From the NCBI GenBank assembly GCA_009103225.1, contig RHPI01002262.1, positions 186,001-250,000 on the forward strand: 64,000 bases of DNA, written 5' to 3'. Position numbers and translations under genes: made by a program. This DNA is from Chlorokybus atmophyticus (taxonomy: Eukaryota; Plantae; Mesostigma and Chlorokybus algae). The notes beneath the pieces were generated by a model, which was not told the DNA's origin, ran no database searches, and saw only the letters and a list, made by a program, of their open reading frames with translations. Of the stretch, positions 53,217 to 58,514 are shown piece after piece. The number at the start of each line of letters is the position of its first letter. Position 1 is the first letter of the stretch.

Positions 53217-54312
53217 GAACAAGTATGGTGTACCCGGTGTTGTCTACTTGTAAGATAGGCTGCTCTACTTTGTAGTATTGAGCACGGTAGGTAAGTGTAG
53301 TGCGGATGCCATCTGCATTATAGGTGCAGTGTCCTTGCTACTGCATGGGCGTGCAGTGCTGTTGTATGCGCCATGGACGATACACTACTGCATGCAGTTG
53401 GGCCTTTGGACAATTTGTGCATGGACAAACTATGTGTTTGGGTATTGTGGTGGTGTTATGTTTGCAGTCACGAAGCTTGCAGTTATGTGCAGCTAGCAGC
53501 AGTATGAGTACCTTATTTACCCGTATAGAAATTCTTTGTGCACCAGAGTCCCCGGCAAAAACGGGTTGAGTTTAGGTAAATACCTACAAACTACCACAAT
53601 TGTCACGTGGGGCCATCTGCCCAACAGTCACACTCAATAGGAGCATGTCACGCTGATGATAGTGTCACTACGTTGAGCACAAGCCCCAAGGGAGGGAGCA
53701 CCAAGCTGTTGGTCTTGCGCCCCTTAGCGTCTGACCTCAGCCCCCTAGCTGTAATAATAACAGCGCCACCAAGGGTGGGGCACGTGCCTACTGCAGAACT
53801 AACGACGACTTTGCACATTGAAGTGATGCACGACAGCCACAGCGACATAGTTAGCCCGGTGGTCGTGCATATGGCATTCAGGTGCGTGGGATGTGTTGCA
53901 TAAATTGCATGGCATTGAAATGCATGCTTATAACAGCCTCATGCTTACCCTGTATAATAGCCCCATGACATCCACATCCATTACTTAGATTAAGTGCAAG
54001 TGTTGCAGCTGCTGGCAACATATGCAAGATGTTGGAAAGAGATATGTCGGTCATGTACAATGTACCAAGGGACATTATTCGTACCCTTGTCTTGCAAAAC
54101 CTGTTTGCTGTCATTTGCTTGAGATCGCGTGGGGTTATGGACCTGCCGGCCCAGAGACTACCATAGTAAGCTGCAGCCCAGCCTGTGGCTTCTCAACCAA
54201 AAACTGAATTCCTACAGCATGAGTTACACAAAACGATATTTTGCAAACAAAAGATATCGCAAGCAAGCGTGGTGTAAACAGTCAGCTACGTGGCATATAC
54301 AACAGCATGAGC

Positions 54313-57300
54313 CTACTCATAGGCAAACACTTCAAGAGGCGTGGCGTCAACATATTCATAGAACTCGGTAATCTGACTGCCGTTAAACTTGGCAACGCTG
54401 CCGCGCACAAGTGGTGTCAGGACATTCCGCACACATGCAACGCAAGACCAAGAAGTAGTTGCGGTGTGCGCATCTGTGCAGTCGTTGTCAACGTACCTCA
54501 CAATGGGCAGCACCAGCTGTTGGCCATCAGTTCTGGTGTACGTTGCCTGCAGCTCCCCAATGACAGTGCCGTCAAACTCCCAGACTTGCAGCAAATTGGT
54601 GCGTACACTTGACACACCCTTCACAAGCCTTGAGGCATTGCCGGCAATCAGAGCATTGAGGCCAACGCCAGGAGCAGCATTACCCGACCGCGACTTGACA
54701 TTATCAGAAAACGCCGAAGACATTTGGAATAGATTCCCAGAATCCAACACATTGAGGGCCTCTTGGAACACGTTCACCTGATTGCACACGTGCGTTCATG
54801 TATATGAGTTGCTTGCCTGCCACGCATGCATGAGCTGTGGTTGGTTTATGGTCTTGATGCTGCAACCATGCAAGTCACCTTACCTGGTTGGCTGCGCGCT
54901 GTCCTCTGCCTGAAGACGGTGTTCGGTGCGTGAGATCCCTCCTGAACAGGTCGAGTCCTGGGATGATGTCGGCATACACCTTGTAAGATTTGAACTTGTC
55001 CCCGGCTGTGCGGAAGATGTCCACTGAAGGGATAACGGCAGTGGATCCATCAGGGCGAGAGTACACGCCATCAATGATGGTGATAATGGTGTCACCCTGT
55101 CACATAAGGCCAGTCACTAACTGCACAGTACACCTCTGCAGCCTTTATGATATCTGCAAACCAATGAGGACATTGACCAAGTAAATACCTGAGTGAACAC
55201 TTCGACAAAGTCATGCCACAGGCGAGAGTTGCCTACAAGCGTGTAGAAGTCGAGTCCAAACCGTCGGATGCTGTCTTTGCCGGTAACAGTCATGTTGTTT
55301 CCAAACGTCAAGTCGGCATCCTCTGTGAAGAAGTTGGCAAAGTCATCGGCTGAAGTGGCTGCGTTGAGCATGCGCTCCACGTTGCTCGGCACAGCCACGT
55401 TGCTGGTCCTTGTTGGAGTCGCTGTGGCTGAAGCTTGACCACTAGTACATGACACAAACACACTTCATATGGTGAAGATGCACCCTACGTTGGTACTCAC
55501 ACTCATCACCACGCAATCTCACCTCGTGCCGTATGTAGTTGTGCCGTTGCCGCCGCTTGGGGCAGTTGTGGTTGTGGTTGTACCGTTGGTGCTGGCGTTG
55601 TCTCCGAAGTAGTTGTCAAAGAACGGCTTGTAGACATCTCTCAGGAAGTACAAGTGCTCGTACTTCTTGTAGCACGCGCCCTTGTCTCCGCAGCGCAACC
55701 ACACAACATCGCCAAAAGCGGTCATCTCTGCAGAAGCATGAGTATGGTTGCTGTATGGTTGCTGGTTGTACTTTAGGAAGCACCTGTGCGGCTTACGAAA
55801 AAGCTTACCATGTGTGCACACGTCAAAACAGACCCAATCAAATGACACGTCCTCTTCTGAGAAGGTGACTCGTGGCCACGTCATGCGCACCCTTGCGTTG
55901 CTCAGCATTGCCCACCAGGAGGACTCGTATGCATTGCCCTGATAAACACATCTGTCACTACAGCATCCACATCCTCCTCACACACGGTCCGCATCATATC
56001 ATGCGTTCAGACATGCAGGCACTCTATGAAAAGCACATGCATACTGCACAACCACTGGAGCTACACTGCATTGACCATTGACGATTCAGTGCAATATAGC
56101 CCATAACTTTTGTCCAGACCAGTGAATCAAAGGCACTCAGCACAGTGATTGTGCACGACTGTCAATCCCTACCTGTGTTCTCCCTTCCCATGCACCGCTC
56201 AAACCAGTTGGCACAGCATCAATGCCATGCTGCGAGTCATACAATGAGTCCTTGGTAAAGTATAGCAGCTCGTCCCTGTACTCGTTGAACAGCACCTGCA
56301 ATGTTGTGTCCCCTTCAGATTTTGAAGCAATAAGAGAGTGCTGAGAGCACAAACGAACAGCAGTAGCTCACCGTAAGACCACTGTACTCCTCACGTACAC
56401 CATCGATGGTGAACACTTTGTTGGCTTTGTCCCCATCGCGAAGCGCCTGTCAACAGATGTGCATGTGCGCTTGTATGGTGGTAGGCACACGTGGTGAACA
56501 CACACACAACACTTGTACCTGACAATGTGTCAACCACCAGCGCTTGTTCTCAATCTCAACCAAGTCTTTGGTGCCATACCTAAAAGTGGTGACAACAATG
56601 CCATCATAGTGTCCCGCGCCTTTCAAGCAAGCCATAGACATGCACCCTTGCTTCCAGCATAATGCACGCATGAACACACACACATGGACGTACATTTGCC
56701 GAATTTCAAACAGCGTGCGATCGCGCAGCGTCTTCCTGTAGATGCGAATGCCCTCAACGCGCAACGCGTCCTCAATGACCAGCGGGGGCGCACGGCTAGA
56801 AGCCAGTGTACTGAAGTCCACGTAAAAATCCCGGGAAGAAAGTGCAGGTGGGATGATTACATTGGTGTTTGCAAAGATCTGTCAGTGCAAAGCGGTGCGC
56901 AATCAACACGTGTTGGGCAAGAAACATCAGCAATGCAAAGTCAAACCGACCTTCCTCGCATCAACATGCACATGCATGCTGGCCTCCGCATGTCGCCATG
57001 CTCAAGACCTGTTGAAAACACGACATGGATGTCGTGCAAGTTACCTGGCCGAGGTTCATCTTCAATGCTGAATAGTAGTTTTGGGGGAACCGCTCCTGCC
57101 TTTGGAGGTATTCAAGGGCTTCATTCACCTCGTTTTCAGAATATGTACTAGGTCCAACAGCTGGAGAAGGCATGCACAGCGCAACTAGGTTGAGACAAGT
57201 GCTATATACACATCCTTGCATACTTGTATGATGCCGTTGTGCGAGCATACCAGCTGCAACCGGTGTCTGTTGGATGTAGCTGAGAGCCTTGGCAACATCA

Positions 57301-58106
57301 CTGTCCTTGTCCGTGTCATCGCAGCGCCAATCCACAGCATGCGAGGAAGAGGTGGCTGCTGAAGCGATGGCGCCTGCACCTCCAGCTTTCAAGATAGACA
57401 GCGCCTTTTGCAAATCCTACACAAGAGCAATGCAGCAACACGCACATTACCACATGGATGAAACCTAGCAGCACATGGCAAGCATCAACATTGCAATTAC
57501 GCATACCACATGCTTATGACATGAGCAGCACAATGCGCAGTGCTTGCTTGCATCTTGTTGTGCTGTATACGAACTCACTAGAAGCAACAATGACGTGTTG
57601 ACTGTTAGACAGGCAAGCAAGAATGCTTGCTTGCATTGAGCATGGCAGAAGCAGCGATGGGAAGCTGAATGCAGACGTACAAGCGTTGGTTGCATGCTGT
57701 TAGCATCGCAGATCCTGGGCAAAATGTGTGACAGCTATGCAATGCTCCACCCGCTTACATCTTGTGTAGAGGAAGGGCCAGGGGCAGCGGTGTCCTGGGT
57801 GAGGTACTGAAGTGCCTTGGCGACGTCGGCGTCGACAGCGGAGGTGGAAGGAGCAGAGGCATGGGAAGATGGAGAGGCTGTGCTTATGCCCCCGTTGCTG
57901 CGGCTCTGATCAAGCAGGCTAAGGGCCCTGGCGACGTCGGCGCTGAGGTCGTTGAGGGCGGCAAGCACGACACCACCACGGCCACGCCTGGCAGGCGCAG
58001 GTACACGCCGGTAAAGTGAAGTCCCATAAAAGCTCGTCCTCTTTGATGACGACGACACGGAGGAGGACGACACCCCCACCGCCGCCGCACACTGCACAGG
58101 CTGCAT
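54313..58106 (-). CDS. Plastid-targeted multidomain protein: helical repeats, uncharacterised central domain, two SnoaL/NTF2-like domains; ~12 exons
   Basis: Transit peptide MQPVQCAAAVGVSSSS..RRGRGGVVLAA. SnoaL-like FANFFTEDADLTFGNN..VTGKDSIRRF...GDTII...YSRPDG...IPSVDIFR..GDK...YADI, and a second AFSDNV..GNAAPG...VWEFDGTVIGE..TYTRTDG..LVLP...ITEFYEYVDATPL. One junction near 56620-56695 is unresolved. Confidence 0.8.
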
Positions 58107-58514
58107 TGCTGCTAGCTCAGCTTAGGGGCTTCCAACAGAGCATCCACCGTCTTGGCTTGAGAACACGAGCTAATGCCCAATTCAGCTACTGCTGGGCGAT
58201 GCTGATGCCTGTGCGTGTCGTCCTTGGCCACCGCCGCCGCCTCCGTCTAGCCCGCCTTGCGCATGTCGCTGAGCTGCTGCACAGGTCTCATGAATCCGAG
58301 ACAGAAGCGCTGCAGTAGTCCTAATTCGGGCCCTGGTTTTGCTGTGGAAGACGGCTAAAACGAGTGCCTTCATGAAAAGGGCCGGTCCATACTTACAGAG
58401 GTGGTTACGCAGCAAGGCTACGTGACCATCGCAGGAAGGAATCTACAATACAAGAAAGCGGAAGTTGCTAATATTAGTTATATTATTGCATTTTACCATG
58501 CTCGTCATCCATTG

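Follow-up and report, generated by a model that had tools for sequence, protein, structure and literature searches.

A spliced gene of the streptophyte alga Chlorokybus atmophyticus joins an NTF2-like domain of very probable bacterial ancestry to two SnoaL_2-like domains whose relatives are neighbours in bacterial genomes

The stretch of DNA examined here (the window) comprises 64,000 nucleotides (nt) of contig RHPI01002262.1 of the alga Chlorokybus atmophyticus (assembly GCA_009103225.1, positions 186,001 to 250,000), and its minus strand carries a gene of 13 exons and 12 introns between positions 54188 and 58260, as established by aligning spliced transcriptome contigs with the window. In each of two sequencing runs a single spliced contig spans the whole interval, with a length of 2521 nt in run X1 (2013) and 2474 nt in run X2 (2021, from a different study). 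The 12 joints were found to be identical in both, and all introns, after small permitted shifts, are of the GT..AG type on the minus strand. X1 and X2 are only presumed to be RNA; since their contigs contain roughly half of the words sampled and lack all of the introns, they can be taken to represent spliced molecules. Runs X3 and X4 contained no contig on the gene. The reading frame starts with an ATG at 58106 and ends with a stop at 54313-54315, giving 746 codons that are uninterrupted across all junctions. The 12 common joints together with the one open frame indicate that the exons form one expressed gene and exclude contamination. Thus, the window holds a genuine, expressed nuclear gene that encodes a precursor of 746 residues. 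At position 54319, X2 reads G while the window and X1 read A, which on the minus strand changes TAT to TAC, a synonymous Tyr codon two codons before the stop, and probably reflects a strain or culture difference.

In a preliminary description of this DNA, made from the letters alone, the gene had been given the range 54313-56880, which begins at exon 4; the gene starts three exons upstream, at 58260 and not at 56880. The four peptide stretches quoted there are all present in the minus-strand translation, in exons 5/6, 7, 8 and 9. The residues that had been read as coding before 'YGTKDLVEIENK' and before 'VLFNEYRDE' proved to be intronic. The single transcript that the description presupposed is borne out by the X1 and X2 contigs, each of which represents one spliced RNA, and so are the spliceosomal introns and the transit-like peptide that it expected to have been gained.

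From its N-terminus the precursor consists of a presequence rich in Ser, Ala and Arg, a run of short helix repeats, the central domain (about 270 residues), a flexible linker rich in Thr, Gly and Ala, and two SnoaL_2-like domains. Residues 1-52 contain no Asp or Glu, 7 Arg or Lys, 10 Ser and 7 Ala, a composition that points to the plastid. The features were located as follows (P0001 and P0002 are paralogues from the same alga and L056 is a bacterial locus, all described below; ORF, open reading frame; UTR, untranslated region).

54188..58260, minus strand: whole transcribed gene (spliced contigs X1/X2, intron ends checked)
57759..58260, minus strand: exon 1, with the 5' UTR, the ATG at 58106, the presequence and the first short helix repeats (contigs)
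57251..57416, minus strand: exon 2, with more helix repeats of the [DE]VxKALxYL type (contigs)
57045..57160, minus strand: exon 3, in which the central domain begins, its alga-specific first helix starting at about 57149 (tblastn with P0002 residues 88-131, per-exon blastp)
56694..56878, minus strand: exon 4, N-terminal extension of the central domain (contigs, per-exon blastp)
56519..56579, minus strand: exon 5, start of the NTF2-like core (first helix), carrying the conserved motif ENKxWWxTHC (per-exon blastp, conservation)
56372..56446, minus strand: exon 6, ALRDGD and an alga-specific insertion (alignment, per-exon blastp)
56173..56295, minus strand: exon 7, conserved EYRxxLxYFxxD motif and an alga-specific insertion (alignment, per-exon blastp)
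55809..55938, minus strand: exon 8, conserved strands WWA..P.V.MTWP..F..E.V.F.W.C.D (alignment, conservation)
55523..55727, minus strand: exon 9, end of the central domain (its last strands, to about 55603), followed by the Thr/Gly-rich linker (tblastn with P0002, composition)
55189..55441, minus strand: exon 10, Ala/Thr/Ser linker followed by SnoaL_2-like domain 1, first half (sub-threshold Pfam, SnoaL_2 ORF profile)
54884..55096, minus strand: exon 11, SnoaL_2-like domain 1, second half, followed by a basic stretch between the domains (SnoaL_2 ORF profile, P0002 repeats)
54497..54777, minus strand: exon 12, most of SnoaL_2-like domain 2 (SnoaL_2 ORF profile; blastp to an L056 ORF, E 6.6e-11)
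54188..54397, minus strand: exon 13, end of SnoaL_2-like domain 2 (last strand), with the stop at 54313-54315 and the 3' UTR (profile, weak alone)
55603..57149, minus strand: entire central domain, exons 3-9 (homologous to the standalone paralogue P0001 and to a bacterial family whose proteins have about 188 residues)
55627..56578, minus strand: predicted NTF2-like core within the central domain (residues 101-266 in the model of the stand-in P0002:85-365, transferred to the window)
54959..55383, minus strand: SnoaL_2-like domain 1, which crosses intron 10 (SnoaL_2 ORF profile)
54334..54774, minus strand: SnoaL_2-like domain 2, which crosses intron 12 (SnoaL_2 ORF profile)

The central domain had been called Trp/Cys-rich and, with 8 Trp, 17 Tyr and 16 Phe in 266 residues, it is indeed rich in Trp and other aromatic residues, while its content of Cys (5) is ordinary. 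Pfam and NCBIfam were run on nine stop-free pieces of the gene and gave only sub-threshold SnoaL matches overall, with no match in either collection for the pieces of exons 3-9. A word search with window:55522-55977:- returned one protein (P0001, E 3.2e-24), which is a 257-residue Chlorokybus atmophyticus model from EukProt that consists of the central domain alone, without a presequence. When P0001 was used in an exhaustive phmmer search of 1.84 billion representative proteins, 11 matches were obtained, whose eukaryotic part comes from Chlorokybus, Mesostigma and one ENA contig and which also include three bacterial clusters. No land plant or other eukaryote was matched by the central domain, which is thus absent from land plants and nearly all eukaryotes in this collection, in agreement with the earlier remark that no land-plant counterpart was known; nor do these representatives contain a widespread plant or eukaryote family of this kind. 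The land-plant frame of that remark was itself misplaced, as the host is a streptophyte alga and the nearest paralogues are proteins of Chlorokybus atmophyticus. One of the 11 matches, P0008 from abalone (Haliotis; E 1.5e-7, summed over 9 short stretches), was rejected as spurious, being a protein of Ig-like repeats.

The Chlorokybus paralogues among the matches are P0001 itself and P0002, in which a presequence and the central domain are followed by four SnoaL_2 repeats. In Mesostigma viride the central domain stands alone behind an N-terminal extension in P0004, is divergent in P0006, and in P0003/P0012 is fused, behind a transit-like extension, to a class-I haem peroxidase (PF00141, E 1.6e-42). 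P0005 comes from a 341-kb ENA contig and P0007, of 121 residues, from an ENA contig of 597 bp; a later profile search added the Mesostigma protein P0019 and, on the 341-kb contig, P0018. Compared exon by exon, the central domain of the window is 68-71% identical to those of P0002, P0003, P0004 and P0019 and 62% identical to P0001. The N-terminal extensions of P0002, P0003 and P0004 are similar, and P0001 has none. P0019 (289 residues) has several window-specific residues in common with the window copy (IFANTNV, THEM) and ends in a Gly/Ala-rich linker, and may be a truncated model of the orthologue of the window gene. P0018 and P0005 both lie on the 341-kb ENA contig ctg32453_96x_l, which is metagenomic, sparsely called and eukaryote-like (L087:10001-11080); each has a signal-peptide-like N-terminus, and P0018 is intronless and is sister to Chlorokybus P0001 in the family tree. 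The peroxidase represents a second, independent fusion partner of the central domain and hints at a role in redox stress.

The bacterial matches, of about 190 residues, align over their full length with the algal domain. A profile word search found 970 bacterial clusters at 90% identity with members of about 188 residues, and among the 120 clusters listed the members were mostly 63-73% identical, across phyla, to one of their number, P0009; none of these carried a precomputed Pfam domain and a few members had been automatically named 'SnoaL-like' or 'NTF2 family'. NCBIfam, run on bacterial and algal members, contained nothing for the family and matched only the EthD part of a fused ORF. In the ESM Atlas a bacterial cluster of 1400 members has the matching shape, with cyanobacteria as its commonest source; a search of the same atlas by features gave no usable match. 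No publication on the family, on its gene cluster or on the algal gene was found in the literature.

Homology between the algal domain and the bacterial family (represented by P0102, P0024 and P0009, with Riv7116_4785 of Rivularia sp. PCC 7116 and the UniRef 'SnoaL-like protein' of Xylanimonas ulmi as examples) extends over the entire bacterial protein, and both contain the motifs ENKxWWxTHCxALR, EYRxxLxYF and WWA..P.V.MTWP as well as the C-terminal strands. Among 79 columns that are strongly conserved in both algae and bacteria, 51 are identical between them, including a His-Cys, two Trp-Trp pairs and many Glu, Asp, Arg and Lys. The window copy keeps the conserved residues with the exception of one Pro replaced by Ala; in exon 8 a Pro that is invariant in all 124 aligned members (ANPRV / AQPGV) is Ala in the window (SNARV). 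The algal form differs from its bacterial relatives by an additional helix at the N-terminus and by several insertions, and identity between the two is no more than about 40-45%. It is also fused and preceded by a presequence, and sits on a very long branch. No relationship was seen between the algal N-terminal helix and Nif11, as a Pfam search with P0001 was empty at E <= 10. In eukaryotes, the central domain represents a bacterial family whose sequences are highly conserved, which is most frequent in cyanobacteria and for which neither Pfam nor NCBIfam has a model.

It had been supposed that the central domain is of a separate, uncharacterised kind. A different picture emerges from an AlphaFold2 model of the paralogous stretch P0002:85-365, which is 67.5% identical to the window domain and headed an alignment of 124 rows (mean predicted local distance difference test score, pLDDT, 89.8; predicted template modelling score, pTM, 0.87; a single-sequence model of P0001, with a pLDDT of 34.6, was unusable). 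In Foldseek against the PDB the top matches were SnoaL-like, NTF2-like, ketosteroid-isomerase, limonene-epoxide-hydrolase and AtzH-type structures; the best was 7e85_A (E 1.6e-4, TM score 0.72 by target), and all of the top 5 and nearly all of the 50 matches listed were NTF2-like. VIA-align against 48,161 representatives gave 3f7s_A as the best match (Z 12.7, root-mean-square deviation 3.0, 124 residues), and all 50 of its top entries were of the NTF2, SnoaL, ketosteroid-isomerase or limonene-epoxide-hydrolase type (Z >= 9.7), aligning on model residues of about 101-266. CaMKII hub, NTF2 and polyketide cyclases were among the structural matches. The model of the stand-in thus has the cone-shaped alpha+beta architecture of NTF2-like proteins, in which N-terminal helices pack into a curved antiparallel sheet, and its first ~100 residues form an extension that is partly common to bacteria and of which the first helix is alga-specific. 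Sequence searches of the PDB with exon 10, exon 12 and P0001 returned no match. Modelled in this way, the central domain is a decorated third NTF2/SnoaL-like barrel and not a new fold.

The genomic context of the bacterial family was examined in species-representative genomes, where a scan with P0009 gave 113 matches, from which 80 loci were kept. These are the best matches to one query, and 54 of the 80 are cyanobacterial; the remainder come from Pseudomonadota, Nitrospirota, Chloroflexota, Eremiobacterota, a Chlamydiales metagenome-assembled genome (MAG), Paenibacillus and others. ORFs were called in all loci, and those lying <=4 kb from the family gene were clustered. The commonest neighbours encode ABM/EthD proteins (61 of 80 loci) and DJ-1/PfpI proteins (46 of 80), followed by isoamylase-type enzymes (26/80), OprB porins (13/80) and xylose-isomerase-like barrels (10/80). 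GMC oxidoreductases, AGE-like proteins (some fused to STAS), pirins and partner-switching regulators of the SpoIIE, STAS and anti-sigma-kinase types are also recurrent, and CMD and glyoxalase genes occur in the cluster as well. SnoaL_2 genes of two types are found beside the family gene. Type A, resembling the repeats of P0002, was present at 29 loci, on the same strand in all and at a median distance of 2.3 kb; type B, resembling the window domains, was present at 11. One or the other was found at 34 of the 80 loci, within a few kb and on the same strand in nearly all. It had been proposed to ask whether bacterial homologues of the three domains are operon neighbours, and relatives of all three are same-strand neighbours in one, mainly cyanobacterial, cluster. 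In the 64 kb of the window itself, tblastn with all bacterial cluster ORFs detected no second cluster-derived gene.

Fusions are common in the bacterial cluster too. In Nostocales the family domain forms the C-terminus of an ORF of 518 residues that also has two EthD domains, and in Calothrix sp. NIES-2100 this ORF (L009:5008-6561) is followed after 4 nt by a 1208-residue ORF (L009:6566-10189) with a CMD domain, two EthD domains, a glyoxalase domain, an AtaL-like domain and two SnoaL_2 domains, and then by a type-B ORF (the whole array being L009:5008-10189). Like the algal protein, these two polyproteins carry small alpha+beta cluster domains on one chain; the fusion partners are different, however, and none of the loci read joins the family domain directly to SnoaL_2. 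Some genomes have another ORF with Nif11, SnoaL_2, SnoaL and ABM domains. Nif11 domains are best known from leader peptides, and their N-terminal position (PF07862) on long SnoaL_2/SnoaL/ABM proteins of the cluster (L020:9785-11290, L078:10510-11325) is an unusual placement. At four non-cyanobacterial loci (L001, L002, L044 and L062, among them a Trebonia MAG, Paenibacillus agilis and an Eremiobacterota MAG) the family gene lies with genes for DJ-1/PfpI, isoamylase-type and AGE-like proteins and is adjoined by STAS, anti-sigma-kinase and SpoIIE partner-switching regulators, the AGE-like protein of Paenibacillus being fused to STAS.

These loci also provided the means of recognising the C-terminal domains. 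The gathering cut-off of Pfam SnoaL_2 (PF12680, 27 bits) is not reached when the window is taken exon by exon, an intron splitting each domain: exon 10 alone matched SnoaL_4 (E 0.0013) and SnoaL_2 (E 0.007, 17.4 bits), both below threshold, and exons 11-13 had no match. The cluster ORFs of the window's SnoaL_2 type, as far as they were scanned, pass the PF12680 cut-off (E 1e-10 to 1e-17). With a profile of 15 short SnoaL_2 ORFs that were selected from the bacterial loci because they matched the window, exon 10 aligned with profile positions 17-67 (E 3.5e-9), exon 11 with positions 82-127 (E 4.5e-10), exon 12 with positions 16-105 (E 6.3e-14) and exon 13 with positions 109-128 (E 0.48, weak alone and in register). 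Exons 10-11 and exons 12-13 align end to end with SnoaL_2 proteins of the cluster (L056:5772-6143, L031:9998-10408 and the tandem L028:8811-9569), with which they have the motifs FTxDAxxxFGN and YxRxDGxxxxxP in common and, over the aligned parts, 28-47% identity; the two-domain tandem also exists in bacteria. Judged from sequence, exons 10-11 and 12-13 are two complete SnoaL_2-like domains with one intron in each, and the two SnoaL-like domains and the Thr/Gly linker of the preliminary description are upheld. A database-wide word search with the second domain (window:54316-54795:-) returned nothing at E <= 0.01.

The paralogue P0002 (1163 residues) is built like the window gene, with a presequence, the central domain and SnoaL_2 domains in tandem. 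It differs in having four repeats of a longer SnoaL_2 type (~190 residues), which pass the SnoaL_2 cut-off (77 bits) and are 57-68% identical over about 190 residues to cyanobacterial cluster ORFs, whereas the window gene has two SnoaL_2 domains of a shorter, more diverged type. Exons 10 and 11 are 28-40% identical to the P0002 repeats, with values of 36-40% for exon 11.

Taken together, the anatomy of the gene and its bacterial ancestry can be stated with high confidence. The distribution of the family is narrow and patchy in eukaryotes as against 970 bacterial clusters, and there is good support for a bacterial source of the genes. The algal members make up a single clade of the family tree and strongly resemble one another, P0002 and Mesostigma P0004 being 82% identical over the kept columns, and a single acquisition before the split of Chlorokybus and Mesostigma is the simplest reading. 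In a midpoint-rooted tree of SnoaL_2 domains the four P0002 repeats form a clade (97% in the Shimodaira-Hasegawa-like approximate likelihood ratio test, SH-aLRT) on a short branch among Pleurocapsales, Chroococcales and Nostocales, although the fork that joins them to the cyanobacteria is weak (81% SH-aLRT). A cyanobacterial donor is likely. The preliminary description spoke of a horizontally acquired fusion of several bacterial genes; bacterial relatives were found for all three domains. The fusion may have been taken up whole or put together in the alga, and the genes may have arrived by late transfer or with the plastid ancestor; in the bacterial loci that were read, the domains lie in adjacent genes or are joined to other partners.

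The genes may instead have come from the cyanobacterial ancestor of the plastid and been lost in all Archaeplastida except the lineage of Chlorokybus and Mesostigma. In favour of this, cyanobacteria are the main source of the bacterial family and of both SnoaL_2 types, the product looks plastid-targeted by its composition, and great age would agree with the long stem of the algal clade. Since no other eukaryote was matched, however, such an origin demands that glaucophytes, red algae, chlorophytes, prasinodermophytes and all the remaining streptophytes lost the genes independently, and the short branch of the P0002 SnoaL repeats and their identity to cyanobacterial ORFs look younger than the origin of plastids, with the reservation that support is weak and sampling narrow. 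We consider an endosymbiotic origin unlikely.

The explanation that we favour, and to which we attach moderate confidence as a whole, is that the common ancestor of Chlorokybus and Mesostigma took genes from a bacterium with such a cluster, and that these would have gained introns and targeting sequences and been re-linked by fusion. Several observations weigh against it or limit it. In the family tree, which points to no particular donor, a very long branch sets the algal clade apart from every bacterium sampled, the cyanobacteria included, and the taxon proportions among the 80 loci are biased by the choice of the best matches to a single query. The SnoaL_2 ORF profile is partly circular, because its members were picked by their match to the window, and the sequence identity of the window domains to the cluster ORFs is low and extends over parts only; as the database-wide search with domain 2 found none closer, the statement that the cluster ORFs are the closest relatives holds within the fetched loci. 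The modelled structure belongs to the paralogue P0002 and not to the window protein, plastid targeting is predicted from composition, and the bacterial neighbourhood suggests stress metabolism and proves no substrate.

As to function, enzymes with the NTF2-like fold use a hydrophobic cone for acid-base chemistry that needs no cofactor. The fusion may be regarded as a Rosetta-stone sign that proteins of the central-domain family and SnoaL_2 proteins act together. The algal product would be imported into the plastid and might there be a cofactor-free, multi-pocket enzyme or small-molecule handler, whose three NTF2-like cones would act on a metabolite that is hydrophobic or arises from redox stress and would run or channel acid-base steps (isomerisation, dehydration, cyclisation or hydrolysis). 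The two SnoaL_2 domains in tandem would probably pack as an intramolecular pseudo-dimer, by analogy with two-domain NTF2-like enzymes such as Lsd19. In Lsd19 (PDB 4rzm) and MonBI-MonBII (9kw6), both among the structural matches (Z 9.8 to 9.9), NTF2-like barrels in tandem or in pairs act on one substrate; these are polyether epoxide hydrolases of polyketide clusters with 11-12% identity and no detectable sequence relationship to the algal protein, whereas the bacterial context here is without a polyketide cluster. Because of the enzyme neighbours, the stress regulators and the Mesostigma fusion to a class-I (ascorbate-type) peroxidase, the pathway would probably belong to oxidative or carbonyl stress metabolism rather than to polyketide or pigment synthesis. 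This functional reading is put forward tentatively.

A non-catalytic role has also to be weighed, in which the three NTF2-like domains would be ligand carriers or oligomerisation hubs and the N-terminal helix repeats docking arms, on the model of the CaMKII hub, NTF2 or the C-terminal domain of the orange carotenoid protein. NTF2-like folds often bind or scaffold, the CaMKII hub and NTF2 appear among the structural matches, and the repeated N-terminal helices suggest multivalent binding. Such a role is nonetheless improbable: the bacterial family is, among the sequences listed, mostly 63-73% identical to P0009 across phyla, many invariant charged and polar residues are common to the algal form, a conservation that argues for a catalytic or specific ligand site, and the neighbours are enzymes. 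Still less credit is due to the proposal, made in the preliminary description, of a polyketide-type cyclase or hydrolase assembly for a plastid pigment or secondary metabolite. SnoaL, ABM and EthD-type domains do occur in the tailoring of aromatic polyketides, and polyketide cyclases were among the structural matches; against this, no recurrent neighbour family in the 80 bacterial loci was a polyketide synthase, non-ribosomal peptide synthetase, terpene, carotenoid or pigment gene, and no paper was found that ties these genes to a product. That the gene is an artefact, either bacterial contamination or separate genes wrongly joined, which the bacterial look of all three domains might suggest, is next to impossible, having already been refuted by the 12 GT..AG introns, the identical spliced contigs of two independent studies and the one open frame, and paralogues are present in two algal genera.

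Beyond the favoured explanation, a wider version of it can be entertained, whose chance we would put a little below even. Several genes of one bacterial stress-type cluster (those for the NTF2-like family, SnoaL_2, EthD/ABM and DJ-1/PfpI) may have entered the ancestor of Chlorokybus and Mesostigma, become scattered, gained introns and plastid targeting, and been re-linked by different fusions, of the family domain with SnoaL_2 in one case and with a peroxidase in the other. If this were true, the plastid of the alga would preserve a complete bacterial pathway, and the fusions would name the interacting partners of a widespread and uncharacterised cyanobacterial pathway.

The gene provides a case, verified by transcripts, of bacterial cluster neighbours that recur as a single fused gene with introns in the streptophyte algae that diverged earliest, and it bears on the extent to which bacterial metabolism entered the green lineage before land plants. 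It also defines a large and highly conserved bacterial family without a Pfam or NCBIfam model, with 970 sequence clusters and about 1400 ESM Atlas members. The fusion partners, SnoaL_2 in Chlorokybus and an ascorbate-type peroxidase in Mesostigma, together with the bacterial neighbours, offer testable leads to the function of an unstudied cyanobacterial gene cluster.

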